A DNA stretch of 64,000 bases, taken from assembly GCA_965235115.1 (NCBI GenBank), contig OZ249440.1, positions 7,316,001 through 7,380,000 of the forward strand. The letters run 5' to 3'. The notes beneath the pieces are model-generated. The model did no database searches and had not been told where the DNA came from. It worked only from the letters and a program-made list of their open reading frames with translations. The translations under genes and the position numbers were made by a program. Below, one piece after another: positions 6,740-47,448 of this stretch. The stretch is from Laetmonice hystrix (taxonomy: Eukaryota). Each line of letters opens with the position of its first letter. Within the stretch, counting starts at the first letter, position 1.

Positions 6740-7206
6740 TCATCAACGTTACAGGTGTATTAAGGTCTCAGCCTTAGCCCTGACTGACGCCACGTTACAG
6801 GTGTATGGGTTATTAAGGCCTCAGCCTCGGTCCTTACTGAGGCCGGTCATCATCAACGTTACAGGTGTATGGGCCATCACAGGTTATAAAGGCCTCAGCC
6901 TCGGCCCTGACTGAGGCCGGTCATTATCAACGTTACAGGTGTATGGGTCACCACAGGTTATAAGGCCCTCAGCCGGGTCAATACTGGGGCCGGTCATCGT
7001 CAACGTTACAGGTGTATGGGTCACCACAGGTTATAAAGGCCTCAGCCTCGGTCCTGACTGAGGCCGGTCATCATCAACGTTACAGGTGTATGGGTCACCA
7101 CAGGTTATAAGGGCCTCAGCCTCGGTCCTGACTGAGGCCGGTCATCAGCAACGTTACAGGTACATGGGTCACCACAGGTTATAAGGGCCTCAGCCCTTAC
7201 TGAGGC
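6740..7206. repeat. Minisatellite, about 74-bp unit with an internal hairpin; 5 long units preceded by 2 shorter ones
   Basis: (A)ACGTTACAGG anchors at 6745, 6792, 6855, 6929, 7002, 7076 and 7150. Long units contain GGCCTCAG-N12-CTGAGGCC or variants of it. Confidence 0.92.
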
Positions 7207-12631: not shown

Positions 12632-12988
12632 GTCTACAGTCTGGGCCCGGTGGTTTACCTTAGTCTACAGTCTGGGCCCGGTGGTTCATACCTTAGTCTA
12701 CAGTCTGGGCCCGGTGGTTCATACCTTAGTCTACAGTCTGGGTCCGGTGGTTCATACCTTAGTCTACAGTCTGGGCCCGGTGGTTCATACCTTAGTCTAC
12801 AGTCTGGGCCCGGTGGTTCATACCTTAGTCTACAGTCTGGGCCCGGTGGTTCATACCTTAGTCTACAGTCTGGGCCCGGTGGTTCATACCTTAGTCTACA
12901 GTCTGGGCCCGGTGGTTCATACCTTAGTCTACAGTCTGGGCCCGGTGGTTCATACCTTAGTCTACAGTCTGGGCCCGGTGGTTCATAC
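12632..12988. repeat. Minisatellite, 33-bp unit, 11 copies
   Basis: Unit GTCTACAGTCTGGGCCCGGTGGTTCATACCTTA; the first unit is 31 bp. It lies about 2.3 kb upstream of the Tae4-like start codon. Confidence 0.96.
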
Positions 12989-15215: not shown

Positions 15216-15308
15216 GAGGAGGAGGTACTGGATTATTACAGTGGAGGAGGAGGAGGTATTGGATTATTACAGTGGAGAAGGAGCAGGAGGTGTTGGATTA
15301 TTCCAGTG
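15216..15308. repeat. Three degenerate copies of a 31-34-bp purine-rich unit just upstream of the signal-peptide exon
   Basis: GAGGAGGAGGT-N2-TGGATTATT-N2-CAGTG, with GGATTATT at 15230, 15261 and 15295. Confidence 0.8.
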
Positions 15309-15338
15309 AATGGCTGGACGTCCGGCGGTGGCTGTAGG

Positions 15339-15410
15339 ATGGTGAAGTTATACACGATGGAGGCGGTGACGGTCACCCTCATGGTGGGCCTCCTGGCCGT
15401 CAGAGCGGCG
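15339..15410 (+). CDS. Coding exon 1 of the Tae4-like gene: signal peptide MVKLYTMEAVTVTLMVGLLAVRAA
   Basis: ATG in good context (AGGATGG), a hydrophobic core AVTVTLMVGLLAV, a V-R-A cleavage-type motif, and a GTAGGT donor at 15411 in phase 0 matching the next exon. The link to exon 2 across 11.4 kb is inferred. Confidence 0.72.
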
Positions 15411-18400
15411 GTAGGTATACTGTACTACTATACATCCAAGTCAGCATGTGCATGACAAAGATAGCAATCATTAAAGCCTAGACGTTGTGAATTTTCTTTC
15501 TCACATATTTGAATCAACTTTTTAAATTCATATATATTTTAAAGTTTTCACATTCAAATTCTGCTAACCTTGAAGAGAAAATCATCGTATCTACTCAATG
15601 TCATCGGTTACCTAATTAAAATAATCGGTGTTTGACACCCACTCATACGATTAAGATACCAGCACGATCCCTCATTTCACAAATCAAGTCGGCATGAATG
15701 AACATCATGGTTTGATTTCACATCTCTTAAATGCATCGTCCCTGAGTGACAACATATAAGGCAGTTGTCAATGACTATAGTCCCATCTTGTATATAGTCT
15801 GGGTGGCTGACTTCTACCTTACAACCACTCCTGACATTGTACAAACGACGATCGTGATCCTAAGGTTCACAGCTCTCATACTTTCTCATTAAAACTCACT
15901 TTCCGACCGCCGCACTGCTAGGCCTCATAAAAACGTCTTATTTCAACTGTCAAGGAAAATCAGAAAGACTTAGATCAGGAACATTTCTCTACATTAACAA
16001 GGTAACTTGGTATGTCCCTCCCGAACAGGCGGTCTCAGTTTCTGTCTGTCTGAATACTTCTCTTTCTTTCTCTGTCTCATTCTCTCCTCAATACCTCTCT
16101 CTCTCCCTTTGAGACCATATTTTAATCGCTGAACTGTAAACTCTCATTGACGGCACAGTGATACTATTTCATCTTGTTTGCGCAAACCAAGTTCCACAGC
16201 TCCCTGTCGGTCGTGCCTGACAGTGACTCTATCCCCTGTCGTCTCACAAACATAAAGAATCACTGCACAACACATGTAGTATCTCCCAACTAGATCGTCA
16301 CTCGTTGATCCGTTCCCCACAACCTGACCTGCTTTAAGTTGCTCACACTGTTTGCTGTTGGTATCTGTTTTTATCTAAACAGCGGCCTGCCGACCAGTGC
16401 CTTCCCACAGTTTGTCCCAGGTTGAAGGGCATGGCTTATCCTTGCCCGACATGACTGTCACGTTTCCCGTTACCAGACCCGACGCCAACACAAACTCTCA
16501 GATTCCTTACACAGTAATTGGAGGAGACAATTAACCGTTGTGTTCGGACCAGACACCGACACAATCAGTGATTGACAGCTCAACTGTTCACGGTGACTCT
16601 ACCCAAGACACAAACATTAATCTTAAATTTTTTTTTTCTAAAACCTTAAATCTCTCCTCTTCCACAATGTTTTATTTTTATAAAACATGTTGACATACAA
16701 AGCCCTGGCCCGTCGTAATTAATGACTCACCAGCACGGTAAACTACCGGCAAATTAAGACTAATTAATTTGCAGTCACCTACAAACACCCAGTAGCAGTA
16801 TAGTGTACATTGTATATCAAAGACCTGGGACCTGGGAAATGAAAGGTCTCCCGTTGGTCCATCACACTCTGGGCTATATGCACACTGTAAAGAAAGCAAC
16901 AGGAAGCGTAGCCGTTTTTTTGGACAAATAAAGAATCGCACACTAAAAACTTGAGGAATCTTAATTTATGTCTATCCGAAACAAAGAGTGAGAACGTTGG
17001 ATCTGAATGGTGCGGGAACGGAACGAACGAGGGCATTGATAGTGTCGTCTGACTGTCTGACGTCACAGTTCGAGTGGCCAGTCCTGCTGTGACGTCACAC
17101 TGCCTGTTGTGATGTCAAACTCGACAATAGGAAACCGCGGAAGGGGTGGTTGGGGTAAAATAACATCTTACTATAGGAATATGTTATGAGATAATTTCTG
17201 GATGGTATGAAAGACAGACACACTCACTGATTTCACGTCGTAACCGCACAACGTGCAATGTGCGAGTTGTGGTTTTCTAGGACAGTGTGTTTTGTGTGGA
17301 ATGGTCGGGCTGTCACTACTGTCGCCTTGTACACCACTTGCCCATGGTGACACTTGCCCAGTCTGACCCCCACCAGTAATAGAGCCGTGAGTATATTAAC
17401 GCCCCAGTTCCTCCCCTGATCACCCTATGGCAACTCTTCCACCTTGGTCTCAAGACACCCTCGGAGACCATCCTGACCAAATATCGCACTGATGCCAGAC
17501 CCAGACGGCCCTGATTCCAGGTAATAGCCGACCTCAGCGATCATTTTTCTGGTCGACTGACGTCTATATGTAGGGACAATATGCTGGCCAGGGGATAATA
17601 GCTTCACAATCGTGGCCGGTTGGCCCCAAGGATATACCAGAAAAAGGTAATCCTAATGCATTTGGCCGCCTGGAATGTGACGCGCTGACACAAGTATATG
17701 GTGTCATGCAATGGGCAACTGACCATATACGGCACGGCGGCGGTGGGCGGGAGAGAGAGGGGTGTGCACGCTCCGGCGGATGACAATCGCCCATTCCGTG
17801 TCAAGTCCCCCATTATATCTCATACAGACTCCTGGCCACTGGAGTGAGAACCTGGTCTATGGATCCTGGCGGTTGCACTCACAGAATGCGTCTGGCTGTT
17901 TGTGGGTAAACGTCTTGGACACGAGGCAGCTTTGTGAGGAGTGTGGGTCGGCCTCAGTCGCAGACCTCAGTCAGGCAGTCGTCCCTCCTCGTATTTGTGC
18001 AATCTTAGCGACGTCTCGGGCAGACTTGCCACACAAAAGAAGACGGTTGACTGTTTGTGAGACTGTCGGCCACTGGTGTTGTCAGGCAGTCCATCATCTG
18101 ACAGTCGTATTTTGTCCTCGCCATGTCAACTCTTTATTCAGGTCGAGTCAGAAACCTTGCATTAAAACACGCTGGGAAAAAAACAAGATGACGGAAATGA
18201 AAAGAGCTTTCCAAACAAAACTATTTGTCTTTTTTAGGGATCCAGGATGTGAGTTATCACAAATCCTATCTGTCAATATGTGGAGTAGAGTGTGTCTCTC
18301 ACTCCTAATTGTGTTTGGCGTGAGCCCCACGTGCCTAGCCTCAAGTCACCAACCGCTGCTAACCAGAGAATGCATACAGCACGCATGCGTGCTCACTGAT

Positions 18401-21400
18401 TACACCGATCACCATTGTGTCTCAGAACCTCTTAATAATAATGAAATTACTCCTTTTTAAATAATACAAATTTTCTCCTTTCAAAATATTCATATAATGA
18501 CAGGTCGAATTGGTGAAATGCACCATTCATCCATTCACATCAGATGGACTTGCCACCATCCACATATATTTCACGCACACAGAATCACACCACATTCACT
18601 GTCTCATCCAAGGCCAACAAGCCAGAGAAAGGGGATGTTATTTCAGCCCCATTCTTGATACGACAAGACAAATTCTGGCGGCCGTCTGGGCGGTCTGTCT
18701 ATCGTATTGTGAGCGGCACACCTGATCGTGTGCTCAGACTCGGAGACACTACGTACTTCCTAAAAACATACCTTTTTCACACAGCACCCAGTGTCCTCGT
18801 GCCGAGGTAAAGTTTATTCCAAGCACGTTAGACCAGACAATCGCCCTCCTTCACGGATCTCAGCAACAGCGTGTTCCGTATTTAATCTAAGAAATATACC
18901 CCTCCATTTTTTTGGTGTTGAGTCCCACGAGAATGTTAATACACAGGACTCATGTGCTGTTATTCCACTGCATGCAGAGATTTCAACAGCCCTGGTCCCC
19001 ACACCTGCTGGACAGGACGCAAATACCGAGCTAGAAACCGACTGCATCTTCTTTAAAAAGCCACATCCGCTCTTCTTTACCATCGAATAGAGCACAGATC
19101 CTAATACAAACCATCCAATCTGTGCCAATCTGTGAGAGTTGACTATACTAACGGTAGCAGTCGCTGAGTACAGATCATAAGACAATAACAGCTATATAAC
19201 TGCGTCAAAATATAACTCACTTTATGTGAACCATAAACATTGATCGAGATATACGTCTCTGGTACTATAGCTTTTCCTGAGGAAAGAAAGCTGAACCTTT
19301 TTCTACATCACCCATTTCCTACAACGTTGTTAAGCAAATACCTGGAGAAACTGCTATAAAAATGGACTCGCTGTTCAACCCAAGGTTTGACCTTATTCTG
19401 GCCACCTTCCATATCTCTCATCTAAAACACCAGTCACCCGCCAAGCCTGAACTATAGACAGCATCTGTCTTCTACACCTGCGTACATTTCAAGAGAATTA
19501 ACCTGTAAAAGTACAGATTACGGGGAGCCCCTGGCCTGATACATCACCGCCAAGTCTGCCAGTCTCTCTCACTCAGCTCATGACTTGTGTCGAACTCCCA
19601 CCAGGGGGCCACGTAAAGACCCTCAGCAGGCAGAGCCCGGATGTCGGCACCATGATCTCGTGCTGCCAAGGTTTCAATGGAGTAAAACTTCCTTTGCCAG
19701 TTCTCCCATCACCAATGATTACCAAGTGAAACGCGAGGAAAGACAAATCCTTCAGAGCATCCATCTCACTGACCTGCTCCTCAATATGTTACCATGGAAA
19801 CCAGACATTATCTATCGCCTCTTGGCATACCTTTATGCTAACCCTTTCCTCCAAACCCTTCAAAGCACCCGCTATCAGTTACAGATGGCTTTTCATTCCG
19901 CAATCAGCCATGGTGGAGATCGGACCTGTGGTTTTAATCATGCTGCTGTCTATGATCAACACCAGACCTGAGATAAACAACTCTCCCCGGGGTACAAATG
20001 AATGGAAAACAACATCCCATCACGCTTTCTCTATACTAATGGTTCTCCTTCATGCCCAGGTACGACCTATAGTTTTACCCTGCATACCTGGGCAAGCCAA
20101 GAATTCAGATCAATCCAGAAAGTCTAGCCCACGTCATCGGTGCATAGAGAGAACAATAGTTTTTGTATGAATAGGTTACAGTTTCAAAATATGAACATAT
20201 CACATTCGGACACGAAGCACTCTCACCAAATCTGTACATTTCCCCTGGTCCCTACCCCACAATCATTTAAATAAGTCAGGCCCACCCGTCGCGCTACTCC
20301 GACTGCCAGACAACAGTATATCTATGGCCACCGTCCTGTGTAATTTGTATTTACCAGCATTGAAAAAAACCTCATCTTTGTAGGTTGACTGATACCATTT
20401 TTTTTTCATTTGACTGAAGGCCAGTTTTATGCGGAGGCCTATTGATGGACAACCACGTCTGTTAGATTACAAAATGAGTTGTTTTTGATTACCGATAGGT
20501 GTCAGGATGGTCAGACGTTTAACATAATCAGGTTTGATTTGAAACTTATGGCTCACTGACTGACAACTTTCCTTCAAAGTTGTAGCATCACAGGTGTATC
20601 CCTCAGTGGCCGACCCGCTACAGTTGACCTCTCTGGGACTGTAGGGAGGCCGGCACATCCCGGATCTCTGAGGTAAACTGGCCACAGATGTATGTACTGC
20701 AGAGACCTGATCGGAAACGGCAGCGCGTTCTTTGTGGATTTCATCAGTAGACTTCAAAGACGATGTAATCAGAACCATTCGTATAGTAAACTGAACTAGT
20801 ACGGAGAGTAAAGCATGAAGTGTGGGTTTACGTATAGCAAGGTTCATTCATAGGTTAGACTGATAACCGGAGGACGAAAATCATGGCACTGGCAATAATT
20901 CAACATATCTTAAGAAATATATTAAACCAATGATGGTGAAAGATACAGATACACATTCAGTAACTTGTACAACTTTCTGAACGGTTTCTGACCTCCAACA
21001 GCTGCTTGAGTCGAGAAATACTCGCCTCGAGTCAGTGTATCCGCGTATGCACGACTATCGCCGCCAACAATAGAGATAGTTTTATCAGACCCCCACACCC
21101 ACCCAGCCCCAACCACTAGGTCCCGTTATAAGTGCAGGTGTTGCGGCCCAGTCCTTGACCTGCCGCCAAGACAGGTGCGAAGCTCGGAGTGCAGGGCGCG
21201 ATGCTCTTTTTATGAGCCATATCTCAATCAAACAACCTCTCCGCATGGTGTCCCCCAACGGGACACAACCCATTCATATTCAGTGATGGTTCCTGATGTC
21301 AGGATGTTTATCTGAAACCTCCAGGACCATCTCATATTGACATCTTAAGACGTATTTACTTATTGCGTCTTAAAAAATGAGTTGCCACCACATGATAAAT

Positions 21401-24400
21401 TCAGGACTCAGAATAACAAGCCCTCCCCTCTCTATCACAATGGAACTCTGCCATCAACTCGGTAGATTCCTAACTTCCTAGATTAACTTTACCAGCAGGA
21501 CAACTGTAAAATCCACCTCTGTGAAGCCGCCCACCACCATCCTAAATTCAATGCCGTAAGGGATGACTCACTCTCTGTCATACAGAAAAGATGATGAATT
21601 TCGAAAATCTTTATCAAATATAACAAGCAGCCGAAGTAATCTAGGGTGTATATCAGATGGTCTTTCTTTCTTAACTGGAGTCTGTTCAGCGTATAGAATA
21701 GTGATAAATGTTAGTGTCATGTTGATTTAAAACATGAAACTTCAGGAGTTTGTTGACATCACCTGTAAATCTTAGCTGTCTCCTTACACCTGGTCAGGTG
21801 ACCAGGTACTGGCCAGGTCCCTGGGCTCACTGGGAACAAACAAAACGAAGAACACAAAACCTCACCACCCACCCCCAGCCACACTTCACTGAGGGTCAGC
21901 CACATATAACAGAACCTCTGAGGGTGATGAAAGCAAGCACGAGTCTGTGTCTGAAGCCAATGTGAGAGCAATAAAACCACCCGGGCAAGACGAGTAAGCG
22001 GAACAGTAACATGGTGAAGGCTGAGGGCGATTTAGAACTGACAGGTGAGGGAGAAAGGATCGTTTTAAATCAGAGCCCTTCATAACAAACGTACCCTGGG
22101 AGGGTATAATGAACCACCCCCCTGGCGAGGTTGGTAGAAGGTCAGACGGTACAGACATCGTTTATAATATGCACTCACCATATATTGAAATGATGTATTA
22201 CAAGTAAGTCAATATTGTATACATTCGTACTCTTCTAACTCCAAGGGGTCGACTTTTTTTTATTAAATGACGACCGGTGTCAAGAACGCGCACCTAATCA
22301 ATCTAACAGGACGTGGTATGGAAAACCTTTTTCTTTTTGCTGTTAGTTCATGCTGTAAAGATAGGGTATCACAGGTGTATCGAGATTCAGTCAGAAAGTA
22401 TGCAGGAGTTTCGGAGTATCTAGAAGGCACAATGTCGCAATGGCTCCCTGATCCGCTAATGTAACCCATTCACCTAACCCCGTCGTCGCTGACAACCTAG
22501 GCGTTCATGGAGGGAATAGCTCGCCTGTAGAGTTCCCACGAGTGACCAGAGCTACCCCAGAGGTGGCCAGGCCGGCCTTGAGACCACACCAACCAGCCCC
22601 ACCACCTTTCACTCAGCCCCGAATCGGTCATTTATCCTAGGCCCAAATTAACCTAATGAGCCCCACCTCCGGAGACCCGCGTCCAGGCAGGAGGGGGCGG
22701 AGGAGGTGTTAGCAATGAGAGGACAGCGCCATCTATCGGCCATAATTAAAGGGCCGACTCAGACACACCTTCAAGATAGCGGTCGATAACGACAAATAGC
22801 CTGGGTCTATTCAATGAGATTCATGTGTAAACATAATCTGACTGCTGTGACAGATGTGGAGTGACTGAGAGTCGGCAGTAGAAAACATTGGGGTTCCCGC
22901 CTCTAATTTCACAGTATTTTATGTCTTAATTGCTAAACAACTCGTAACCAATAACAAAGATTCCCTGGTGACCAGTAGGGCATTGTACACTTCAAATGTA
23001 CCAGTCCCATGAAATGACCATTACCTGGACCCGAGGGAGGGGTTAGGAATAGTCCCACGGGGTCTGGAGGGTCACTAAATCGCCTTTAGCAGTGCCACTT
23101 ATACTGGTCAAGATGTTTGGTCAGTATCCAAATGAATGGTCAGCGAGGTAAGCAATTCGCCCAAGGCCTTGAGTGGCTATTTCAGTGACAAAGTATGCAT
23201 TGCCTGAAAACCTGGACACAAACTTTGGTAGGTTATATTGGGGAGAATGTACATCGGCTCTGTTCGCCTTTCTCGGGAACCTGTCCTCCCTACAGGAGGG
23301 CCCAAGTACCTTTGTCCCCGATTTGTACACAGCTATATCTCTTCCCCCTCGCTCCGTTAAGTGAGAGCCAGCCCTTTTGATGAGAGTGCTCTGGTATGCC
23401 GATTATCTAACGGTATTTCAGGAGGCTGGTGGGTTGTAAGGGGGGCAGGTCCCATCTCTTTCACCGGCCCAGTCTTCCCTTGAAGCTCACAGAGAGTGGC
23501 AGTAACAATACTAGCCACCCTGTGTGAGTCGGCCTTCCATCGCGCTGTCCCGTGTCGATCTGACCCTGACCAACCGACCGACCGTCTCAACAACACCCAG
23601 CGATTAGTCGATCGCTACTTTAGTCTCCAAACTCCCCCAAAATACCAAAAGAAACCATCAAAATTATATCAAAGCCACTCAAAAACAGCTTGTCAATTTC
23701 TTCCCAAATTATAATCTTGTTTCCCGCCACCATTCCTACCCCTCATTTTGTACAACTGGAGGTCAAGTTTCTATTGACGCCAACTCTCAGCAATCCTGCA
23801 ATTTGCCCGGGGGGCTTGGTAATTGAAGGAGAAAGAGGACTGTCGGAGTCGGAATTACTACTCATGTCACCTCAAGTCGTGTGGGCAAGCATCCAAAGAG
23901 CTCGGCTCGTCTTCAGGCGAGTCCGTTCATGTTCCGACTGATTGTAAAACCCACTTGTCGTTGGCTGTCGATATAAAACGGGAAGACGATCTAAAGCTGG
24001 GATGTTCCCTTCACCTGACACGAGCGGGAGCGTGGTGGTAGCAGGTGGGTCACACCTAACCACGACGTGTCCCATTCACCAAACGGGGCCGGCCTTGTAT
24101 GGCACAGTGTCAAGCTAACACCCCAACTCATTTTACTGGCGTCGACTCTACCATTACTGGCCGAGCCGGCAACAATTCCTTTCCCTTTCTTCTCATTTTT
24201 AACGATCCGTTGCGTCAGTCACATCCAGGAGGATAGTAGACCACATCCTGACAACCCATAATGCGCAGAGAACAACACGGGAGTGACTAGTTGCACAAGT
24301 ATGACACTCCTTCCACAGGGCGTTCGTGCCCGGGATGTGAGTTCTTTGTAATAGAACCTGCGCCCAAACTGGGCCCAAAGTCTATAAAAACCACAACCCT

Positions 24401-27400
24401 TCAATGTAGCAACCGGGCTTCCTCCCACTCACACTGGGGAGATACACAGGCGAGCCAGCACGGAGCAGGGCAATGCCTCTTCACAAAGGACATAGACTAC
24501 TTTATATCTGACCTCTGAACCCAGCATCTGTGACCCTTGAACCGGGGTCAGGGTGAAGAGACAGCCCCTAGTTTTAACAATCGCTCCCGGTCAGCCGACC
24601 CCGAATGGCAAGCCACGCCACTGGGTGACACATCCATTCCGAGTTCTGTTCACTTCCGACCTTGTGACACACCTCTGTGACCTTGACGGGACCTTGACAA
24701 ACAGAGGCCGCTGGCAACAGCGTTCCCCTCACTGTACACCCTCTATTCTGGTGGCATTGGTCTTGTGACATATAATTAACAGATTCAATAGGCCCCTATA
24801 TCCGACCTTCCAGTGACCTGTGCCCCTTGCGCACGGGACACTATTTAATTCAATTGCTTCATCCCAGAACATGACCACCCTACCACACATGGCGCACTTT
24901 GGGCCGCACACTCCCATCATAGACCCCGCCCTCTACCGGTCAGGTATGTCACTAACCCATTCAGGTCGGCAGTTCATTTCTGCATGGGTATCTTTCATCC
25001 TTGATAATGGTAATATGTCTTCAGATCGCTATCACAGGTTTGTCGGAGACACTGAATTTTGATGGAGTTTCTGTTCGCCTGAGCTTACAAAAGATTCATT
25101 GTAACCTTTCCCGAGTGTCGGCGTCAGAAACCCCATGCAGGTGGCGTCAGAGCCTGTTCAAGCCGCCTAAACAGTACCGACATGAAGAGAACCATCGTGA
25201 GAAACGCTAGCCCCCACAATACACCGCCACAGATCATAGAGACCTACACCTGAAACCCCCAACCAAACACCTCCACAACACAATAACCAAACACCTCCAC
25301 AACACAATAACCAAACACCTCCACAACACAATGCGCAAACACAACACCCCATGCTTAATTATCCCTGAAAGACTTTTTCTCCAAAATCACCGGCCATGGA
25401 GACCCTTTCTACGACACAAAGTCAATCAGAGTCGATTCCCCGGCCCCGAGTGCCTTCCACAGTCAAGGGGTGAGCTGAAGCGTGGGACAGCAACCCTGAC
25501 TTGGATAATGGTGGGTTTATCTAAAAGTGAACCCGGTATAACAATCTTAACTGAATACTGGGCCCCTGAGAGCCAAGCCTCAGCAAACACGGAGAACTTC
25601 GGTCAAGCCTGAACCATTTGTCAAGGCGTACAGTGGGTTGTCTCCGTACTCGTGCCCTGTTCGTCGGGCCACCGCGCCTCGGACCACCGATCTCAACAAG
25701 GTTCCCACAATGAGAGCTCTACACGCCCTGCACTGACAAAAACTCCAGACAGTATTCACAATCACAGAAAATATTTCACATGCCATGGTTTCTTTTGTTG
25801 GTTCTATAGCTTAGCATGGCAAGTTACCATGTCATGTATCATGTCAACCCCTTGTTTCATGGTGCACAGCTACTTAAAGGGGGGATCTCCCGACTGCAGA
25901 CACCCCCCCCCCCCTCTCACCCCTTTCTCCTTCCGCTGAACCCCTAGGTATGAGGGCAAGGAGTGATCGGGAAGAGCCCCCCCCTCCCTCCCTAAGTACA
26001 GTCCTCACTCACATGCTTCTCAACAACTCTACATTCAAATCACCCTGTCAACGTTTCCGAACTTGTTGACATACTGTCGGTGTATTCAACAGCCTCACTG
26101 AACTGAACCGCCAAAGGAGCACATAATGTCAATAAAAACACTGATCCTTGAAACTTTTCCACTGCAAGACATAAAAGACAGCTGAAAAGGTATGTCACCG
26201 CCCCCCTTACTGAGGTCTGTTTGTGATGGTTTGTGGCCCCAACCGAAGGCAGATCTAGACAGGCATGCAATTACACCTTCAACTTGATTCTGGGACTAGT
26301 TCGTAAAAACTGAAGATCTTGCTTTAGCTTAAATCGTACGTTTTTACGAACTGGGTCCAGGATACTTGTTTCAACACAGAGACACCGTCACACGTAAGGT
26401 CACCGCGATAAAATCTCACCCCCCCCCCCTGATAAAATCTCGCAACTTTCTTTCTTATAAAAAAAATGACTTCATAAACCTTTCTATTAGTCAGTCATTG
26501 ACTACTCTGACGCATGCACATTGAGTTTCCATTCCTTGAGGTACTGGTTTGGGCGTTGATGACGTATGCTCTGCGAAAGGGTACTGCAATAAGGGCAGGG
26601 TTCGGTTCCCTTGAGGTGCTGCCAATTTTCTGCTTTTTGAAATATTCCCAAAGTTAACAGGGGTAATGGCGATGCTCTTGTACAGTGGAGATAAAGTCCT
26701 CTGTATCCTGAGATAGCGTCTACACCCAGGGAGGTACATGACTTTCTCCGCCTGATATTTACATGTTTTCTCTCTTGATCTACTTGCAGATGGAACTGCC
26801 CAAGTTCAGTCAGATGGTACTACTCTACCCGGGGTATTACCTTCACGGAGGGCGGTATAGAGACAAAGATATCATCTCTATGATAGGTGGTCACTTCACG
26901 TCCCACATGCACAACACGGCCTCAATCCGCATGTCGTGGGCCCTCAATAAGTACGGCGGGCGGCACGCCCTCGGCACCCAACAGGTGAACCTCTCAAAAC
27001 ATGGCAAGGACAGCTACACGGGCAAGGACGGCCAACAGTACATCTTCAGAAACACCGCCTTCGGGCCTTTTCTGGCCGAGCGCTATGGGAATCCTTTAGT
27101 TGCCAAACCTAATCAGTTGGACCACACAAAAACAATGGATCCATTCACAGGCAAGCAAGGCATTGTGCGACTGGTCAGTTACCATAAGTCTCACGCCAGT
27201 GGTCACATGGGTCTATGGGACTGCACTAACTTTATACAGAGTCGTGATTGGACGACAGAAAGTCAAATTATCTCAGTGGAGTTCTGGGAAGCACCAGGTA
27301 AGACTAATCTCTGACTTTATCATGTTTATGTAATTCGAGAAACCAGCATGAGAACCGCATCTCGCTCTCTTAGAATCGAACTACAGTTCACTAACAACAT

Positions 27401-30400
27401 TTCATGATTACATGAACTGTTCACGTCGTGAGACCTATCGCTACCAACGCTTAATCAATATTGTTATAGCATAACTCCCATTGCATGCCAGTATCTTATA
27501 TATAACATTGTAAATGGGAATTAGTTTCGCTGAAATCGAGCCAAAAAAAACTAGCAGGTTTCAATGCATTCCCCCACACAAATATATCAAATACTACCAT
27601 CACAAAGTATAGCTCTAAAATAATACATAATCTGGATGAAAACTCTCCCAGACTTCGTGCAGAGATTTCCTCTGAGATGACAAGAGGTATAGCGTCTCCC
27701 GTGTTTGGTAACCGGTAAAACATCCGGGGTTCTCCAGTACAGGTAATACCTCCAGTGTTTAGAGGAGCATTCCTCCAGTACTTAGACAGTGCCTGCAGAC
27801 ACTGATGGTATCCTGGCAGTCGTCCATGGCCGGGAGAAGTGGCTCCAGGTGCACAGATCACGCTCTCACCACCTGGAGAACTTCACAAAACACTCCGCCA
27901 AAACCGTCCAACTTTATACTCCTCAAACTTTGTTAGCAGATTCTGGCATCACTGACATGAACCACACAGACGACGGCGTACGTCTATGTGTTCAACACAG
28001 ACATGAAACATCGCTTCTGGCTGTAGGTTTTACTTCTGGAGTTTATAATGATGGCATCCCCAACAAATTGGTAAAACCAGCGAATATATGAATGATAGGA
28101 GAGGCTACCGCTTTGTTTGCGGGCAATAACTTTGTGTGGCATTTATATGCTGCCGATGGGCAGCCAGATTGTAGTACATGTTGAGTTATCACCTACGTAA
28201 GCTGCGGCTGTTTGGGGGGTAGGGAGAGGTTTACCAGAAGTACTCGTGGATGGGCGTGTACTCCGCCGCCTACTCCGCAAAAATTCAAGGGAAGGGGCAC
28301 ATAAGTTTGACCTTACAATGTCAACTGATGTACTAAACTTTACGTCATCATCTCAAAACGTCTCAGTAGTATACTGTGGATAGGGTGTGAGGACGTGTGA
28401 CTTCTAGAAAAAATATCGCACCAGGATAAAAAAATATTTATATGCCATCTGGGCTGAATGTTGGATAAAGTCATAGAGCGACGCCGAGGTAGGCCAGTCG
28501 ATCGTCAGTCGATCCACCTGGTAAAGTAGCCGAAATAGAAAAAGAAAACATCAATAAAATTGCAAACGTTTCCGAGTCACGTATGTACATCCTCAAATCT
28601 GGCCTGACCCAATGTTCGGAACACGTCCTATCCCCGACACGGAGTCTCTATGGTTACCGATCAAACAGGATTAGTCCGGCTTTGGTTTTCTGCTGACCGC
28701 CATGTTTGTCACCCGACGGTGTCCTCTACACGGGGTCGGTGGTGTCCCCGCCGGCCGAGTCCACACGACTGTTGACCGGCCATAGTGAGAGCACGAGGTC
28801 GGTCTGACGGTAAATACAGCCAGACGGTCAACTTTACCGTCAGAGTGAGTCTCCCGCTCGGTACACACAGAATGAGGCGCTAGAATGGGTTCACACTCTG
28901 GGTCCACACAAACCGGGACAGATGGTAACTACCGGCAGAATAACTTGACGGGATTGGATTTCCGCTCACTGGGATCAATTTCTGATAGAGCCCAGTAAAT
29001 CTGGCTCTACTCGAACTTCTATCTGACTTGTGAGGTGGTTTTTTGTGGAGTGATGAATAGCCGGACTTTATAATGAGTCTAGAAGTCTTCAAGTCTAGAA
29101 GGTACCCTGGAATCCCTTGTCAGTTTAAGTTTCGTTTTTCAAGATCAACAACTGAGCTGTTATATTTCAACACCCTCGCCGTATAGCTGACTCCAATTTG
29201 TATAGCTCAGGGAGAAACACACTCCTTGGAACACTTAAACCAGTTTTTGTGAAATATGTCAGTGGGCGTTGGATGGAAATCACCCCACAAGTATACACAT
29301 CAACTTCAACTTGCCACTCCTCTTTGGTTTTTCATTCGGGAGGTCAAAACCAATTTTCTTACAAGGATAGATACAACTATTTGAAAGTAATCTCAAAGTA
29401 GTTTTTACTGTTTATCACGCACCGCTAAAGCCTGTAATCATATATCATTGCACAACTTATCCAGCCTGTATACGTGTTAGAGAGGTAAAGGTGGGCTCCC
29501 TTGGGTTACAACCCCCCTCTCAGCAGCATCCAGTGATAATAAGTGGTTACGCCGTACCCTTGTTGTATGGGGCCAGATGGGCGCTCCCCTTCCAAACCCA
29601 GGCCCCAACCCCCGCCAACAACCCTAACTATACCTTGATGTAACCCTTACTCATACCCCACCCCACCTCTCAAATCACCAGGTAGCTCAGCCCCCCCCCC
29701 CCCCCAACCCCGGACTGCACTCCCTGCGGCTACCCTCTCCGAGCCCCGGGGGTATCTTACGTCACCGAGGTGATGCTCGGCACATTACCACACCGGAAGA
29801 CAGACAAATTAGACCGGATTTTCACGCTGACCCCGCTGTGTGTAAAGGGCTCAATGTATTCCCCTCCAGGCCACTCTACCCCCCACCCCCACCCCACAGG
29901 GCTGGGACATCAGCTGCTCTAAGTGCTAATGTGAAACGGGACTCTGACACAGTGTGAAGATGTGTATTTCGTGTTATGCAACCTGCATTTATTCACTGTT
30001 ACTTACATATACACCGGCAAGGTTTGTTTGACCAGACTTCTGAGGCAGATAAAAATCTGGAGCCAAGGTCATGTTACAGGTGAACATGAAAGACTCAAGG
30101 ACATCAAAGAAGTCAAAAGACCCGCCACGCGTCCCACTGACAGGTCCACAGGAATAATTAATACCGTCCGTGTATAAACAATATACTTACCTGTCAAAAA
30201 CTGCCTCAGGTCCCAAACACGTTGCTTACTTCTCGGCCTGAATCTGTCATACTAAATCATTTTCATGAATTGTTGCTGTAATAGCTTATAATTGAGCCAG
30301 CCGGTTCGGCCGATCAGAGCCAGATCCTCTATGACCGGCCTGTATTTTGTCCGGATATAGGGTCGACGATTCGGAAAGGACCTGTGGACAATCTATAGAA

Positions 30401-33400
30401 GTACCGGTGGAGCCCACCCTGAACACCCAACTTTGGGGTTTTTACGCTGCAGGAATTTCGCCTGTAGTGAAGTGACTGGTTCCAACAGTAGAACGTCACA
30501 CGCTTGCCCTCTCAACCCCTCTCAATAAGTGATTACATATGATTACAGGGCATTACATCACCCTTTGTCTGCTATCCACCCACAATCTATACCCTATAAC
30601 AGATGCTGGGGCTTGCGAGACGATGGGTTTACTTACAATCCGATCAGATTATTCCATTTTGGTGGTAATTACCATGAAATAACCGGTAAATGGCAGCATA
30701 ATGAATAGAGTACCAGCATATCCAAGTGAGCCACTGCCTTATGTTAATGATAGGTCCGTTAATTAACGTCAAACATTAACATACAGCTGTTGATTGACAA
30801 AGTCGTGACCTGTGTTCACGCTGACCCTGAGGCTAGTACCACAATCAGCCGATGACATAATGGAAAGAAACAGGCACAGAGAACCAAAACACCTGGACCC
30901 GGTTTTTTCTTAGACATTTGTAGTCAGTCTCAAACAAAGTTTGCATTTGTGTACTGGACAGACAATGGATATGTCGGTCTGTTGTTACCGGTAACTGTCA
31001 CACTGACCAAACAGAGCCAAGGCTCACAGAGCCAGGAGCTAATAGAATCTAGTAGGACAGATACTCCATTCCACGCCTGGTCTAATATACCAGCTGCTTT
31101 CTGTGTCAAGTATTTCCAAGGCGCTGTATACGGTGATCATATGACACTACTGTATTCTAGTCGTCAATGACTGGCTCGGGTCTCGCTCAGTAACTGACCT
31201 CTAGCGGGCCTTTATTTACTCCTAATTGGCGTGGCATTATTTACATTTTAACGAGCCCATTACTTGCCATAGAAGGGTATTGATTATGGGAGACCGAAAA
31301 GATCATAAGGCATTAGTTTACTAATGGTGGGCGCCGAGTGGGGGGAGCATGAAATGTGCTCCAGTTAGTAAACCATAAGTAGGTAGGAACTCGGACGTCA
31401 CTCAGCCTACATGGGGCACACCCTTCTTAACTCTCACCTGTGCCTTTTCTAGGAGTTTCTGTTAAAAATCAGAATTCAGATACAAGGGGTAAAATCGTTT
31501 CATTCACTTTGTCAGCATGTACCCATTACACTAGAATAAAAATACATGTATAGTCATTATGGAGCTGAATCTGTTGCTGCAGCCTGCCGTATCTCAACAG
31601 CTGTATCATCATTACAAGCCCAGGTGAACGGGGTTATCTTACCTGTAAACAAACCACTGATCTAATCATTGTGTGCCATAATTTATAACTTCATCATGCA
31701 CCTGGACATGGTGGAGTTCTACGGTGTGACATCATATCAGGAAAACATTGTTTCCCACGAGTAACCACCCACCCCCCTCTCTCAATGTGATATACTCAAT
31801 GTAAACATCCTGTCTTGATATACCAATTGTTCCGATTGTTAGCGGGGCAGGGGGGGGGCAGGGGGGCAGGGGGGCAGGGGGGCAGGGGCCGGGTCAGGGC
31901 CGGGGCCGGGGTGGGGCGGGACCACCACAGGGTGGGACCGTCCGGTGGGACCGTCCGGTCCCGTCGCACCAGCTGTAGGGCGGTACGATATAACAGAACC
32001 ATATACCACACCATCACAATCTGCGGGAAGCAATACATTTTAATGGAAAGTCAGAAGGGCTCCTATGTCCGGTTCCATTGCGATACTTTATATAAGCTTT
32101 ACAAATTCAAAATAGGGGATGTCCCATTTTACGACCAGCTGTGGCTGGAGTCGCCAGGCCTCCATCCAATACTACTTATCATTACACATACCCCATTCTA
32201 CTGAAACCTGGCGCCGCCGGCTGAAGATACTGTACTGTTTGTATTCATAGAAAATAGCTGTTTATTTGAGGTCGATCTAAACCAATAGTGGCTACATGGC
32301 CGTTTGTTTGTAGTGTCAGCAGATAAAGGTCCCGAGCCGCACCCAGATATAGATACTGGCCGTGTCATGACGTGAAGCAGGTTTGGCTTCACGTTGATGG
32401 TCGTAGTGATATATTATATATTTGGGATGAGAACCCTGAGGGGGACTCCGAGGATCTAAAGATTTTCCGGCTGACCACATCCTCCGGTATAGAACACGAT
32501 CACACGTTCAATCCTATAAGATCAAGTTTATAATACATGTATATACATGAATGTGGTCACAATGTGGGTCTACTTCATGTAGGGGTTATCTGGTAACTAT
32601 GGAGAACCCGAGTAACGTTTGAAGTTTTTGTTTTCTATATAGGCTGGGCGGTGGGGGTGGGTTACCACTATTGATGGGTCTACTGGCAAACTTATGATAC
32701 GGTATTTGTGGAGGGTATCTCTCGGTGCCATTTTATATAGAGACACTTATATATCAACAACCATTAGACTTTCCGCTACAAAACTCGGGTCCGGGGCCCT
32801 CACATAGCCTCGAGCGTCAGCTGTGGGCCTGCACAAACATATCAGTCGATTCTAAGGAAAATGGTCTACAAATTTTCAGTTTACATACTGTTTGCTACAA
32901 AAGATAGAATGTGATTGCTGGAGCATGACTATATACCTTGACTTGGATAGCATCAATAACACTTGTTATTATCGTAACTTACTTAGAGAATGAATCTCGG
33001 CCAGATATAGCTTTTTACGAGAAGCGAACATAAAAGAAACAATCATGTAAATTTCGAGGGGTCTAGCATACGGTACTCCGGGGCAACACCTTGATGTAGG
33101 AGATGTTTATTTATTGTCAGAAACTCAAATAAACAACCTTTTTATTCTGGCCTCAAGTCAGTTACCGTAGAGGCGCACCCTCCTTCGTTAGACCCTGGAG
33201 GTAACAATTTCTCGCCTTGAGGAAATGCCCGAGTCGTGACTGAATGGGGTAAGGGGGTGGGGGTGGGGATCTCCTTGAATGACTCAACACTTCATCAGAT
33301 AGGTATATCCCATACACCTTGGATCAACCAAACGACCCAGTCATTAAGTGTTACCTCCCTCTTGCTTGGCCTTGCATGCATGCCAGAAAGAAAACCTCGC

Positions 33401-36400
33401 TTGACACTGTAAAACTCGTCAAGTACCCAGCCCTCCCCTTTCTCCGCCAAGCGCACCCTGCTCCGCCCCACTGCATGCCCCCTCACCTCTCTGCGTGCTC
33501 CTCCCGACCACTGCATGCGGCCATTATCAGTGCAGAGACACACGGACCCCAGCCCCGGGACAACCCATCTCCCATCTGCTCTCTCCCCAACCAGCAGGAC
33601 CAGCTGCCCACCGCCCGGCTAAAAAAGGCCATCTCTACCCTGGGGTATCTCTGTGACTGCATCTGTCACAGCATCATGTCCCCCCATCATGTTATCATGT
33701 CACTGGGGCTCTTACATCGTCATATCACATCACAGGCAGCTGCTGGGAGACAAGTTGATATCTCTGGAGGTTCGCAACAATCACTCCCGCCTTTAACTGG
33801 CTCACAGAGGCATGCAAACTCACATCAACCCCCTCCCCTAGGCCATTACTGTTTGGTAAAATTTGTCATTCTTCACCAAACTGCCACTTCTCAATGAATA
33901 GCGAACTTCTAGCCTCTTCAGTGTTCGGTATTCTCTAAATACGTCTTCTCAGTTCTGTTTTCTTGTATTTGGGTCGTCATGTAAATAAGAATCCAATGAC
34001 AGGCTTTTAGTCGCCATCTGATAAGGCTTCACTAAAATATTTATACATGAGAATTAATAGCTTGTGACAAGGCATACAAAAAGTTTTATTCTCTGAGGTC
34101 AATTATGAATAGATTGCCGCCCCAATGTTCTTCAACCAGGAGCTTTGAAAAACAATTACACGAACATCTGTTGGAGTATGTTTTGTATTTGCCTGGAAGA
34201 GGCCAATTGATTATAGTTGGATGACTCCATTTTCAATTATATAATGTGAGCTATTTCGGGAACCCCCACTCACCTAGGTAAATAATGATATCAGGTGATG
34301 CAGTTCGACTTCTCTTATAGATGTCAAAAGTTGGATTATATGAGACCAACCATATTCACTGGCTGTGTATCCGAGTCGTTCACTTTGTCCTAGAGATATT
34401 CTTTGATCACTGAGGACATACCTGCGACGTGCCGAGCGCCTGCCGCCACAGCTAACCGCCTAATCTGACTGCTGCATGCCTCCAGAAACAAACGTCGTGT
34501 TCCTTTTGTCAAAGTAACACATAAATTTTCGTCGGATTGGACCAGTGGAGATACCAGAGGCAATGTACAGTGATCTTATCCCTTCTCGTCTGCCAACAGT
34601 GAGGCCAATTACCCCGATTTAATTCAGGCTTACTGAGCCCTGCCTCAACCAGTAGCAGGACACTGTACTAAAGCCAAAGATATATTTTGTACCTGCAGGC
34701 TTTGTAACGGGTGCACGGCCAGACACTCAAATTACAAAATCTTTAAATTGTGAAGCCAGCTTATCTCTCATGCTGATTTCTATGACTTTAGTTAAGTTCA
34801 TGTTATGGGCGCAGATGCCTTTCTCCGCGATGAAAGATGGAATATTAGTAAAGGATTTCAGAACACTTTTGTAACTATTGACTGGCCTTGCGGGGCCTAC
34901 CACAATCGGCCTGCTCCACATGACAAGCGTTTCAAACATTCGGTTATCATGAGAGCCACCTAATATGGAGATCAAAATAGCACTTATTTTCCTGTGCCTA
35001 AATTTAGCCAATTTGTCCAACCAAGAGTGACGCTGCTTTTCAATGTTCGATTACAATGTAATGTCCATGCCATGCGAGACATCTACCACTACTGGTAATT
35101 ATTGTTCAACAGATGATATGAAGTGGCTAATTTCAGCTGTTGATGGAATACATAGTCAGAATAACTGGCTGGCTATATTGACTACTTGTCAGTTCCTTTG
35201 TATATCCACCAGCAGCTGAGGAGCTTCCAAATTTTAGGGCAAAACATCAGTGCTTTTGTACACCACGTACTTGAAGAAGGTTAAAACATGCACCCTCCCA
35301 TTCCCTTATAGGGTCCATGCCTGCCTCTTCTTAATTGTATGTGTTGAATAATACACTGTGTTCTGTTGTCAGGATAATAGTCAGCAATCAATAAAACCCA
35401 ATGAGGGGGTCACTCTTCCATGCCACTACAAACAACATGCAATGTTTCCTTGTTAAATGGCACCCCGACTCGCTCAGGTCTGATCGCCCGGTGGTCGACC
35501 CCGGTCAACGGCTGTCAAACATTGAGTAACGCTATCACATGGCCGGTCTTCAAAGCTGTCACGGGGCCGGACACACATCAAAGGACGGTCGGGTAATGGG
35601 ATTTTATTCCTACCTGGCCACATCCCTTGAGGGGAAGGGGTTGGGGGTTGTATAACATAATAGGTAGGGCATCTCGGGACGTGAAGAGAATGGTATAATA
35701 GGGAAGCAGGACTGTGGACCAAACGTGAGGAAACGGGCCCGTATAGATGTTAATGGTGGTCAGGATAAGATCAGGTATGGCCTTGGGCTATGTTAAAACA
35801 CGGCCCCACACCGACTCCGACTCCCCACACCCCCGGCCACCGACACGTACCCGTCCCCCGACCTCAGGCGTCAGGGAGCGGGCAAACCTTACACAGCCAT
35901 GGACGCCAAACTCCTGACAGAAAACTGGCATCAATCTGGAGTGAAACCTCTCCCGGGTAATAATCTGTATATCTTCACATGCTCCCAGGTGTCTACACCA
36001 TTAACCCTCCGTGTATGATGGAACCACGCAGTGAGGCATACTCCGACACGCCCGTCCGGGATGGGCGTTAATGGGTTAAGGGTTTACCTTTAATGAGGTT
36101 TAGGGGAAGGTAAGGGAATCCCATGGGAAAATACCTGTGAAGTATTCAGGTGGGTTCGGTAAACGACCATGGTACAGCTGTTGCTTGGGTAGTTACGTGT
36201 TTACTGGCTGAACACTACCCTTTTGAAGGAAACAATTCAAACTCACTTTGACTTTGAAAACTTTCACTATGAAAACCATAAAACCATAATAGGTTCTCCA
36301 CCATCGATTTAAAAAGTATCCTTGACTTCGGTCATGATATATTTAAACTGCACTTGCCAGTTTAAAAAGTCCCGTGGGACAAATATCATGACAAGTATTC

Positions 36401-37650
36401 CACAAATTGCGACACGAGATCATGCCTGTGAGTGTGAGACTTTCACTACCTGATGTCAAACAGATTCATCATGAACTCATACAAACTGACACTGAGGTTT
36501 TAGATGCTGAGACTTTACCTGGGGAGTCCTAACAGATGGGAACCCTTTAATTACCCCACCTCCCCAAGTCCACCCTCGACACCCCTGACAAGGGTTGAGA
36601 TTACACACAGAAAGAGGCGCTCTTAACCAGCATTAGCCGTGCCCGATATGGCCTGTCCGATAATGGTCAGACTGTGTGGTCAGGATGAATAGCCTGATCC
36701 CGGTGATCATCAAAGGACCGGTCATCCAGGTGGACAGGTCTGTAGTGACCATCAGGCTGGACAATGACTCCTCACTGAGGGATGAGACTGAGTGTCCACG
36801 GCCGGACGATTCCCGTGATGGATGACACTGGACACTACTTTGTCTGCTCACCGTGGTGTCTCTCAACCCCCCTCCTTCCCGTCACAGACTGACCATTGTC
36901 CAGTCGGCGTCCACTCCCTGCCATACCTGACATATAGCACCAGTATCCAGTCATATATCATCCTGGCGAGGGAAGATGCTTTCAGAGGTATCATCAGGGG
37001 TTGATTTAAATCTTAGTTTTCAGTCCAGATAAGGGCCACCAAGGTAGAGTTTGAAAACGACCAGACTACTTCTATATCAGCGGTGACTTCTCATGTCAGG
37101 TTGGATTTACTGCTCCTGTATACAGACCAGTAGAACCCGCAGGTGATCACTGTCCTGTCCAGTAGATAGGGAACGCCAGGCAATATTTTTCAGAAATTAC
37201 AGTCTGCTCCGACAGCCTCAACACCTGCCATTGGTGTACTGGTCATTAAACCCTAATATACAAACTTGTAATTTAACCGCGATCTTGATATGCCGCATAA
37301 CTTAGAAAATAACGCAAAAAGAACAAAATATGGCTTTAAAAGTTCCCTAGAAGAAAAACCCAATTGTTGTAGACCTATTCTCAGTTTACTGACGTGTATC
37401 TCTTGATTTTCTGTCACCAGATTCCTACTGTCCCCCGCCAAGTAACTCCACGGTCCCGGTGCCTCACCTGGAGAAGGCCACCTTCAGCCCGGAGAACATG
37501 GCTGGTCTCCTTCACAGTCAGCAAGTCCTGCACCAGGAACAACGTCACCACTACCGTCGTCGTCATCACGACATGAGCCGTCACCATGGCAACCCCAGTC
37601 TATCACGTCATCGAGACAGGAGGACGGAGGACCACTGGCCTGGCCGGTAG
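15339..37650 (+). CDS. Secreted Tae4-family (T6SS amidase effector 4) domain protein, dae4-like, catalytic Cys replaced by Ala; 3 coding exons, 269 aa
   Basis: join(15339..15410, 26790..27297, 37421..37650) = 72+508+230 = 810 nt. One open frame, GT-AG boundaries and matching phases (0, then 1). In-frame upstream stop at 15174-15176. The middle exon carries the Tae4 motifs NTASIRMSWALN, TGKDGQQYIFR, FTGKQGIV, SGHMGLWD and the terminal EFW. Confidence 0.8.
25261..25332. repeat. 24-bp tandem repeat, 3 copies
   Basis: AACCAAACACCTCCACAACACAAT at 25261, 25285 and 25309. Confidence 0.9.
26290..26360. mobile_element. Very short MITE (71 bp) with both terminal inverted repeats
   Basis: The left end CTGGGACTAGTTCGTAAAAAC and the reverse complement of the right end CTGGACCCAGTTCGTAAAAAC match at 18/21. 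26299-26332 matches the reverse complement of 6320-6353 at 31/34. Confidence 0.7.
26790..27297 (+). CDS. Coding exon 2: complete Tae4-family (NlpC/P60-like fold) amidase domain, 169 codons plus 1 nt
   Basis: Acceptor TTTTCTCTCTTGATCTACTTGCAG (AG 26788-26789) and donor GTAAGA at 27298. Motifs are colinear with enterobacterial Tae4 as I recall it (NACPIRMSYVLN, TGSDKKRYMFR, FAGKQGII, TGHVTLWN, C-terminal FW). Confidence 0.93.
31844..31920 (+). other. G-rich tract with strong G-quadruplex potential, in intron 2 of the Tae4-like gene
   Basis: (GGGGGGCA)n-type repeats followed by GGGGCCGGGTCAGGGCCGGGGCCGGGGTGGGGCGGG; more than ten G3+ runs with 1-3 nt loops. Confidence 0.75.
34105..34400 (+). mobile_element. 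Decayed LINE (L2/CR1-like) apurinic endonuclease fragment
   Basis: Reads NRLPPQCSSTRSFEKQLHEHLLEYVLYLPGRGQLIIVG*LHFQ, resembling the YRPP...LIIVGDFNFH segment of L2/CR1 APE domains. A downstream PTIFTG resembles PTHxxG. Contains stops. Confidence 0.45.
37421..37650 (+). CDS. Coding exon 3 of the Tae4-like gene: Cys/Pro linker and His/Arg-rich C-terminal tail
   Basis: Strong acceptor TCTTGATTTTCTGTCACCAG. Phase 1 completes GAT (Asp), then it reads SYCPPPSNSTVPVPHLEKATFSPENMAGLLHSQQVLHQEQRHHYRRRHHDMSRHHGNPSLSRHRDRRTEDHWPGR and TAG. GC-rich and codon-like against AT-rich flanks. Confidence 0.72.
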
Positions 37651-47291: not shown

Positions 47292-47448
47292 AGCAAGGGG
47301 CTGATCACTATGGCAGAGTTCCAGCTACCGATCACCATTGTTGCCAATTTAGAAAAGAAATATTGAATTGGCAACTAGGGCCTTGCAGTTGGCGAAAGGT
47401 TTGGCGCCCAGTTTTAATTTGTTCATCATCTAATCTCATTTTCACACG

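Follow-up and report, generated by a model that had tools for sequence, protein, structure and literature searches.

In the bacterial amidase StTae4, a type VI secretion system (T6SS) toxin, each of the substitutions C44A, H126A and D137A abolishes toxicity (Benz et al., PMC3695027), and Asp137 serves as the third catalytic residue, hydrogen-bonded to the histidine (PMC3695027). The transfer of tae4 genes to animals and the addition of secretion signals to them are already known (Chou et al. 2015, as cited in PMC8713801). In Nematostella, the Tae4-derived protein nvDae4 cleaves peptidoglycan and kills Bacillus subtilis, and its C63A variant does neither (Margolis et al. 2021, PMC8713801); a second Nematostella Tae4 homologue is without the catalytic cysteine (PMC8713801). 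Until now, transfers of Tae genes to eukaryotes have been taken to supply the recipient with an antibacterial enzyme (Dae2, nvDae4). Here, we analyzed a 64,000-nucleotide stretch of the Laetmonice hystrix genome, referred to below as the window (contig OZ249440.1, positions 7,316,001 to 7,380,000, forward strand), in which a three-exon gene encodes a Tae4-like protein with a predicted signal peptide, an alanine in place of the catalytic cysteine and a basic C-terminal tail. This protein probably lacks thiol amidase activity, and we consider it fairly likely to be a secreted, non-catalytic member of the Dae4 family that binds rather than cleaves.

That L. hystrix carries one single-copy, expressed, three-exon gene of the Dae4 family can be regarded as nearly certain with respect to gene model and expression. 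The coding parts of the exons (72, 508 and 230 nt) add up to 810 nt, corresponding to 269 codons and a stop, and all borders follow the GT-AG rule. The features of the gene, in window positions, are as follows:
14724..15338, + strand: 5' untranslated region (UTR), probably continuous with exon 1, as suggested by a transcript contig; 14724 is the end of that contig and not a mapped start.
15339..15410, + strand: coding part of exon 1, encoding the putative 24-aa signal peptide MVKLYTMEAVTVTLMVGLLAVRAA, supported by translation, a GT donor at 15411 and the junction in a spliced contig.
15411..26789, + strand: intron 1 (11,379 bp, phase 0, gt..ag), from splice borders and the spliced contig.
26790..27297, + strand: exon 2, encoding the whole Tae4-like domain (precursor residues 25-193), supported by Pfam PF14113, PDB match, AlphaFold2 and Foldseek.
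26919..26921, + strand: GCC codon of Ala68 (Ala44 of exon 2) in the nucleophile column (StTae4 Cys44), from the phmmer alignment.
27204..27206, + strand: CAC codon of His163 (His139 of exon 2) in the catalytic His column (StTae4 His126), from the alignment.
27222..27224, + strand: TGC codon of the clade-invariant Cys169 (Cys145 of exon 2), from the column census.
27298..37420, + strand: intron 2 (10,123 bp, phase 1, gt..ag), from splice borders and the spliced contig.
37421..37650, + strand: exon 3, with a 'DSYC' segment, an NST sequon, a linker, a His/Arg-rich tail and a TAG stop, from translation and the spliced contig.
37429-37431, + strand: codon of Cys197 within the 'DSYC' of exon 3, from translation.
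37651..37787, + strand: 3' UTR, 137 nt or more; past exon 2 the contig continues for 367 nt, up to 37787.

The initial annotation of this DNA, made from its letters, had placed the three coding exons at 15339-15410, 26790-27297 and 37421-37650, and these coordinates proved exact when the ATG/gt, ag/gt and ag/TAG borders were checked; its intron lengths of 11,379 and 10,123 bp are likewise correct. It had also described the exons as in phase, which does not hold, the introns being in phase 0 and phase 1 with no single shared phase. The start codon of exon 1 stands in the context GTAGGATGG, and gt adjoins the end of the exon. The closest in-frame stop upstream of the ATG lies at 15174, and the stretch from there to 15339 is free of in-frame ATG codons. 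Two short upstream open reading frames (uORFs) begin at 15173 and 15310 in the presumed 5' UTR. The second (15310-15345, 11 codons) overlaps the main ATG and lies directly 3' of a GGAGGAGG-rich tandem repeat of about 31-34 bp, present in about 3 copies at 15212-15309, 30 bp upstream of the start codon; a role of the repeat and the overlapping uORF in translational control is possible. At the 3' end, a motif search up to 38200 found no AATAAA or ATTAAA polyadenylation motif.

Splicing and expression were assessed in four sequencing runs of one sample that contain exon 2, of which three behave as genomic DNA and the fourth, X2, comprises 58 Mb of contigs. The three DNA runs cover all of 24500-29500, with contigs that cross both borders of exon 2 (e.g. 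26517-27631), whereas X2 covers exon 2 only in this interval. One 1,563-nt X2 contig aligns to 26789-27297; its loose 5' end is identical to window positions 15380-15409, the end of exon 1, and its loose 3' end matches 37421-37450 with one synonymous A>G difference (CCA to CCG). Both junctions predicted by the initial annotation, 15410>26790 and 27297>37421, are therefore present in a single spliced contig of a run that appears to be RNA. Because this contig has 687 nt before exon 2, and because the fraction of sampled words from 14724-15410 that X2 contains (0.90) equals that of the DNA runs, exon 1 probably includes about 615 nt of 5' UTR.

Protein and Pfam hidden Markov model (HMM) searches of the 627-Mb genome found a single Tae4-like locus, on a chromosome-scale contig (HMM, 53.1 bits), and no second, cysteine-bearing paralogue. 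Since the genome holds one locus, a retrocopy is ruled out, and since DNA contigs run across both exon-intron borders, so is bacterial contamination. Within the sample, the 508 nt of exon 2 contain one difference (26870 T>C, GAT to GAC), which is synonymous, versus about 5 and 9 in 273 and 334 nt of the adjoining intron sequence, a pattern that fits purifying selection; exon 3 has one difference, also synonymous. An artefactual origin, be it assembly contamination, a decaying pseudogene or a chance open reading frame (ORF), comes to mind only in view of the bacterial type of the domain and its confinement to one ORF; nothing was found in its favour. It has a negligible probability and was rejected: the locus is single, contigs of all three DNA runs continue from the exon into both introns, a spliced transcript was found, the frame is intact with all coding differences synonymous, and many animals have orthologues that share these introns.

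Exon 2 alone matches the Pfam Tae4 family (PF14113) with an E value of 5.2e-14 and 52.8 bits (cut-off 27) over profile positions 2-125 of 125, in agreement with the earlier assignment of this exon to Tae4 and with the claim that no intron interrupts the domain. It also matches Tae4 in the PDB by sequence (phmmer, E 5e-5), and an AlphaFold2 model of exon 2 was obtained with a predicted local distance difference test (pLDDT) value of 90.9. In a Foldseek search of the PDB with this model, 11 matches reached E <= 0.001 (2.5e-9 to 2.3e-6; template modelling score, 0.66-0.76), and every one of them is the structure of a Tae4-family effector, the source being Salmonella, Enterobacter, Agrobacterium or Serratia; the next match follows at E 0.14. 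A search of the ESM Atlas returned bacterial Tae4 clusters only. When aligned to StTae4, the window motif 'HNTASIRMS' falls on 'QNACPIRMS', with Ala68 at the position of the nucleophile Cys44, and 'ASGHMGLW' falls on 'ARGHVTLW', with His163 retained at the position of His126. A conserved aspartate, Asp177 ('SRDW'), lies 14 residues past His163, and Asp137 of StTae4 lies 11 residues past its histidine. By sequence and modelled fold, the protein is a member of the Tae4/Dae4 family; it probably falls outside the class of active amidases.

The loss of the nucleophile extends far beyond L. hystrix. A word-indexed search yielded 53 close homologues, and a profile search of 1.84 billion representatives yielded 252 matches with a sharp gap after about 33. 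Key columns were counted on one HMM alignment of 195 family members, comprising 78 close sequences and 117 distant, mostly bacterial, representatives, with the following results:
Nucleophile column: close sequences, Ala 46, Ser 23, other 4, gap 5 and Cys 0 (n = 78); distant representatives, Cys 96/117.
Catalytic His column: close sequences, present in 67/76; distant representatives, His in 98 (n = 117).
Column after 'LWD': close sequences, Cys 76/76; distant representatives, Gly 83/117.

Besides, Asp177 is kept in 67 clade members, Ser occupies the column next to the nucleophile in 26, and a subclade of about nine sequences has no His either, with the rest of the protein kept. Because the nucleophile cysteine is an alanine here, is absent from all 78 close sequences, and Cys-to-Ala mutants are dead, an active amidase is unlikely, and we hold with good confidence that the protein is not a thiol amidase. 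The initial annotation had suggested an antibacterial or microbe-sensing gene; its first option is improbable, the same change killing StTae4 (PMC3695027) and nvDae4 (PMC8713801), so that only the second, putative microbe sensing through binding, survives.

The close sequences that were complete enough to be taken into a maximum-likelihood tree, 60 in number, form one branch (Shimodaira-Hasegawa-like approximate likelihood ratio test, SH-aLRT, 92). The nearest relative of the window protein (P0001) is 94% identical to it, other close homologues are 60-72% identical, and the closest named relatives are annelids (59-70%). Named members of the clade, all annotated as uncharacterised or hypothetical proteins, span five lophotrochozoan phyla:
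Annelids: Capitella teleta, Paralvinella palmiformis, Lamellibrachia satsuma.
Molluscs: Dreissena polymorpha, Acanthosepion pharaonis (cuttlefish).
Brachiopods: Lingula anatina.
Nemerteans: Tubulanus polymorphus.
Bryozoans: Watersipora subatra.

Molluscs had been named earlier among the recipients of such genes, and Dreissena and the cuttlefish indeed fall in the same clade. A well-supported subclade (the P0030-P0051 group, 14 representatives), known from metagenome or transcriptome sources only, has the motif 'GGAAAVRLS', an unusual composition and, in the loop that precedes the 'GRQGIV' strand, an insertion rich in Arg (e.g. 'RRRPRRRRRPSW').

The modules that flank the domain in L. hystrix recur across this clade. 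The L. hystrix leader has a 12-residue hydrophobic core followed by V-R-A|A, with likely cleavage after Ala23; from inspection and comparison with homologues, which favour the signal peptide earlier assigned to exon 1, we infer that the protein is secreted. The homologues comprise transcript-type sequences (n = 17, window included) and roughly fifty prokaryote-style ORF calls on genomic contigs. Most of the N-terminally complete transcript-type sequences have a hydrophobic leader ending in V/I/T-x-A (x-Q/H/R-A in the spliced homologues) right before [WFA]x-ELPKF, and all 17 continue from 'EFWExP' into 'DSxC', a linker and a basic tail, with 'PDSxC' in 17/17. The genomic ORF calls read '..Q' (from a cag acceptor) directly before [MV]ELPKF, the start of a clade-specific N-terminal segment ('ELPKFSQ..LLYPGY') within exon 2, indicating that the position of intron 1 is conserved; at the other end, roughly fifty of them read '..P-G..' into a gt donor, indicating the same for intron 2. 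In such calls, neither the signal peptide nor the tail is included, and the second cysteine is missed as well. As both intron positions and all three modules are common to the clade, the exon additions look ancient and probably occurred once, before these phyla diverged. The suggestion that the architecture might be new is thereby not supported for this gene, since the signal peptide, intronless domain, 'PDSxC', basic tail and both introns recur clade-wide; the architecture of the clade as such may nevertheless be new to the literature.

The precursor has exactly two cysteines, the clade-invariant Cys169 in exon 2 and Cys197 in exon 3, the latter within the 'PDSxC' of every spliced homologue. 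When the full-length homologue P0010 was folded, the mean pLDDT was 84 for the segment 'TPDSVCPPST' and below 50 for everything after residue 203. Because both cysteines are conserved, the 'PDSVC' of P0010 is modelled at pLDDT 84 and its tail lies below 50, an intramolecular Cys169-Cys197 disulfide would tie the start of exon 3 to the domain, with a disordered tail behind it. The last 40 residues of the window protein include 9 His and 10 Arg (isoelectric point, pI, 11.6), and the tails of the homologues, likewise basic, have 'H-x-LRH' runs in loose form and, close to the end, a Trp. Exon 3 had been described as a cationic tail; a tail is encoded, yet not a tail only, since the first residues, DSYC, are conserved and probably part of the fold.

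Taken together, we propose that the gene is an old descendant of the Dae4 family that has turned into a secreted, probably disulfide-stapled pseudo-amidase, which would bind without cleaving. Because the active-site helix and the histidine are conserved, the old substrate cleft may still be in use, and peptidoglycan becomes the first candidate ligand. Peptidoglycan or its stem peptide would be held in the retained Tae4 cleft, which still has the His and the N-T-x-x-x-R-M-S helix motif, and the disordered His/Arg-rich tail would provide affinity for polyanionic bacterial surfaces or be processed. The product might then act as a secreted microbe-binding or microbe-sensing factor, analogous to the non-catalytic peptidoglycan recognition proteins (PGRPs). 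While a secreted, non-catalytic, binding-type Dae4-family protein as a whole has the better part of the evidence behind it, peptidoglycan or microbe binding as its function, based on sequence and analogy, is a tentative assignment that may well be wrong. A wider scenario is possible but doubtful, namely that the capture of a bacterial T6SS toxin domain predates the divergence of the lophotrochozoan phyla and that the domain, having lost its nucleophile once, has persisted ever since (over half a billion years if that divergence is dated as usual) as a single-copy, secreted, disulfide-stapled peptidoglycan-recognition or signalling ligand. If this were true, the clade would represent an unrecognised class of pattern-recognition or ligand proteins in annelids, molluscs, brachiopods, nemerteans and bryozoans.

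Several points weigh against the proposal of a secreted, non-catalytic binding protein. The putative disulfide is derived from conservation and model confidence, the signal peptide was judged by inspection, X2 is not recorded as RNA and its RNA nature is deduced from its behaviour, and a literature search on the named clade orthologues found no paper. Moreover, His and Asp177 are retained in most members, Ser is found at the nucleophile column in 23, and Ser69 adjoins Ala68 in the window protein, which together make a Ser-His-Asp hydrolase chemically conceivable. Cysteine and serine nucleophiles do interchange in some protease clans. The protein could accordingly be a still active peptidoglycan amidase, a true Dae4 enzyme in which Ser69 is activated by His163 and Asp177, and the strong conservation of the N-T-x-x-x-R-M-S helix, together with the frequencies of His (67/76), of Asp and of Ser at either column, would suit such an enzyme. 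However, no position carries a nucleophile clade-wide, many members reading Ala-Ala, Ala-Pro or Gly-Ala-Ala-Ala there, the subclade of about nine has also lost the His, and the Cys-to-Ala mutants of StTae4 (PMC3695027) and nvDae4 (PMC8713801) are dead. Cys169 was also considered as a relocated nucleophile, but in the model it sits where the His strand ends, six residues down from the His and too far to replace the lost cysteine, and this option was rejected. We therefore regard an active amidase as quite unlikely.

The two remaining explanations differ from our proposal in what the protein is for. The working part could be the tail, as the precursor of a cationic His/Arg-rich antimicrobial or signalling peptide released at basic sites (RRR, RHR, RR), with the Tae4-like domain as a carrier, targeting module or pro-domain. 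The composition and pI of the last 40 residues, the basic tails of all spliced homologues with their recurring 'H-x-LRH'-type runs and a Trp close to the end, and the disorder predicted from the P0010 model all fit a released peptide. On the other hand, the tail is poorly conserved relative to the domain, which is under the strongest constraint, and the terminal Gly-Arg of the window protein does not recur in the homologues, whose C-termini read ..WTMQ, ..VVKS, ..LLNG or ..IWLQ. A peptide precursor in this sense is improbable, and it does not exclude binding by the domain, with which it is compatible. Alternatively, without any part in immunity, the dead domain could have found a new use outside the cell, serving development or tissue biology as a ligand or a component of the matrix. 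In a neighbouring group of the tree, which includes P0095, a Tae4-like domain stands before Hint in the place of the Hedgehog signalling domain, and the gene has been kept as a single copy across phyla without the family expansion common among immune effectors. Tick Dae2, by contrast, is reportedly an immune effector. The tested eukaryotic relative nvDae4 is also one (PMC8713801), and the second, Cys-less Nematostella homologue is induced by 2'3'-cyclic GMP-AMP (2'3'-cGAMP) through NF-kB (PMC8713801). A purely non-immune role hence appears rather unlikely, and a secreted pseudo-amidase that binds its ligand remains the explanation we prefer.

Outside the Tae4-like gene, no protein-coding gene was recognised in the minisatellite-rich 64-kb window, and none of the ORFs inside the introns has a Pfam match. 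Two large minisatellites are present:
2776-4527: 45 bp x 39 copies, 99% matches.
49904-51799: 39 bp x 48.6 copies, 94% matches.
Large ORFs at 3413-4584 and 49850-51881 were rejected as genes, being read-throughs of these minisatellites, whose arrays give spurious ORFs on both strands; a weak Annexin match of one minisatellite ORF is probably due to chance. Smaller tandem arrays lie at:
6808-7195: 74 or 147 bp x 5.
12632-12989: 33 bp x 10.9.
47445-47926: 50 bp x 9.7.

The introns had been said to carry host-type repeats, which is correct in part. Intron 2 contains a dispersed element of about 80 bp (31842-31923) with at least 16 copies of 78-98% identity on many other chromosomes, which may be a fragment of a short interspersed nuclear element (SINE) or a miniature inverted-repeat transposable element (MITE), and intron 1 contains a small tandem repeat (25261-25332); by contrast, 3.2 kb sampled from intron 1 proved unique.

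Compared with bacterial Tae4 (PF14113; 4hff, 4jur, 4hfl, 6ijf, 4bi3), the window protein belongs to the same HMM family, has the same papain-like NlpC/P60 fold in its model and shares the helix motif N-T-x-x-x-R-M-S and the 'GH..LW' His strand. Different from the bacterial enzymes, its nucleophile Cys is replaced by Ala and the Gly after 'LWD' by the invariant Cys, the 'PDSxC' segment and the basic tail are added, and the Cys135/Cys139 pair of bacterial Tae4 (PMC3695027) is absent as such. The gene is eukaryotic and flanked by introns, with a signal peptide where bacterial Tae4 relies on T6SS delivery, and no counterpart of Tai4, the partner of bacterial Tae4, is expected in an animal genome.

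In the tree, the window clade is adjoined by fusions of a Tae4-like domain to a Hint ('Hog') module (P0095 and AFDB A0A2B4STS4), which are presumably cnidarian, judging from the accession. P0095 (407 aa) has a Tae4-like domain at 54-165 and a Hedgehog-type Hint domain at 178-349 (E 3e-44), and the AFDB entry A0A2B4STS4 is named 'Indian hedgehog protein'. The Tae4-like domain of P0095 may correspond to the 'new upstream motif' described for cnidarian Hog proteins (Buerglin 2008). In these fusions the catalytic pair is also broken, the Cys being kept and the His lost ('ICSVLLW'), and they carry a C-terminal Hint module where the window clade has 'PDSxC' and the basic tail. In this neighbouring group, the Tae4-like domain might also be set free as a ligand that carries a lipid modification.

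The non-catalytic PGRPs, such as insect PGRP-SA and PGRP-LC, derive from amidase_2 enzymes, zinc amidases of the T7-lysozyme type that are unrelated to Tae4 in fold and origin. The logic we propose is nevertheless alike, in that a peptidoglycan amidase fold minus a catalytic residue would be kept for binding or sensing, and the likeness is one of analogy only.

The window gene resembles the described Dae4 and nvDae4 in being a Tae4-derived animal gene with a putative eukaryotic secretion signal, introns and expression. However, nvDae4 keeps its cysteine (C63), whereas the window protein naturally has Ala at that position and falls into a distinct clade of lophotrochozoans that has an invariant Cys and a C-terminal extension of its own. 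In our literature search, we found no description of a loss of the cysteine across a whole lophotrochozoan clade, nor of the invariant Cys pair, 'PDSxC' extension, basic tail and conserved introns of this clade. With named members in five phyla, the clade keeps the fold, the cleft motifs, a new Cys pair and the basic tail, and never the nucleophile. If peptidoglycan binding is true, the single-copy gene would be a candidate for lophotrochozoan immunology, where few pattern-recognition proteins have been tested, and, different from the Tae transfers read as the gain of an enzyme, it would represent a toxin domesticated into a sensor or opsonin and not into a weapon.

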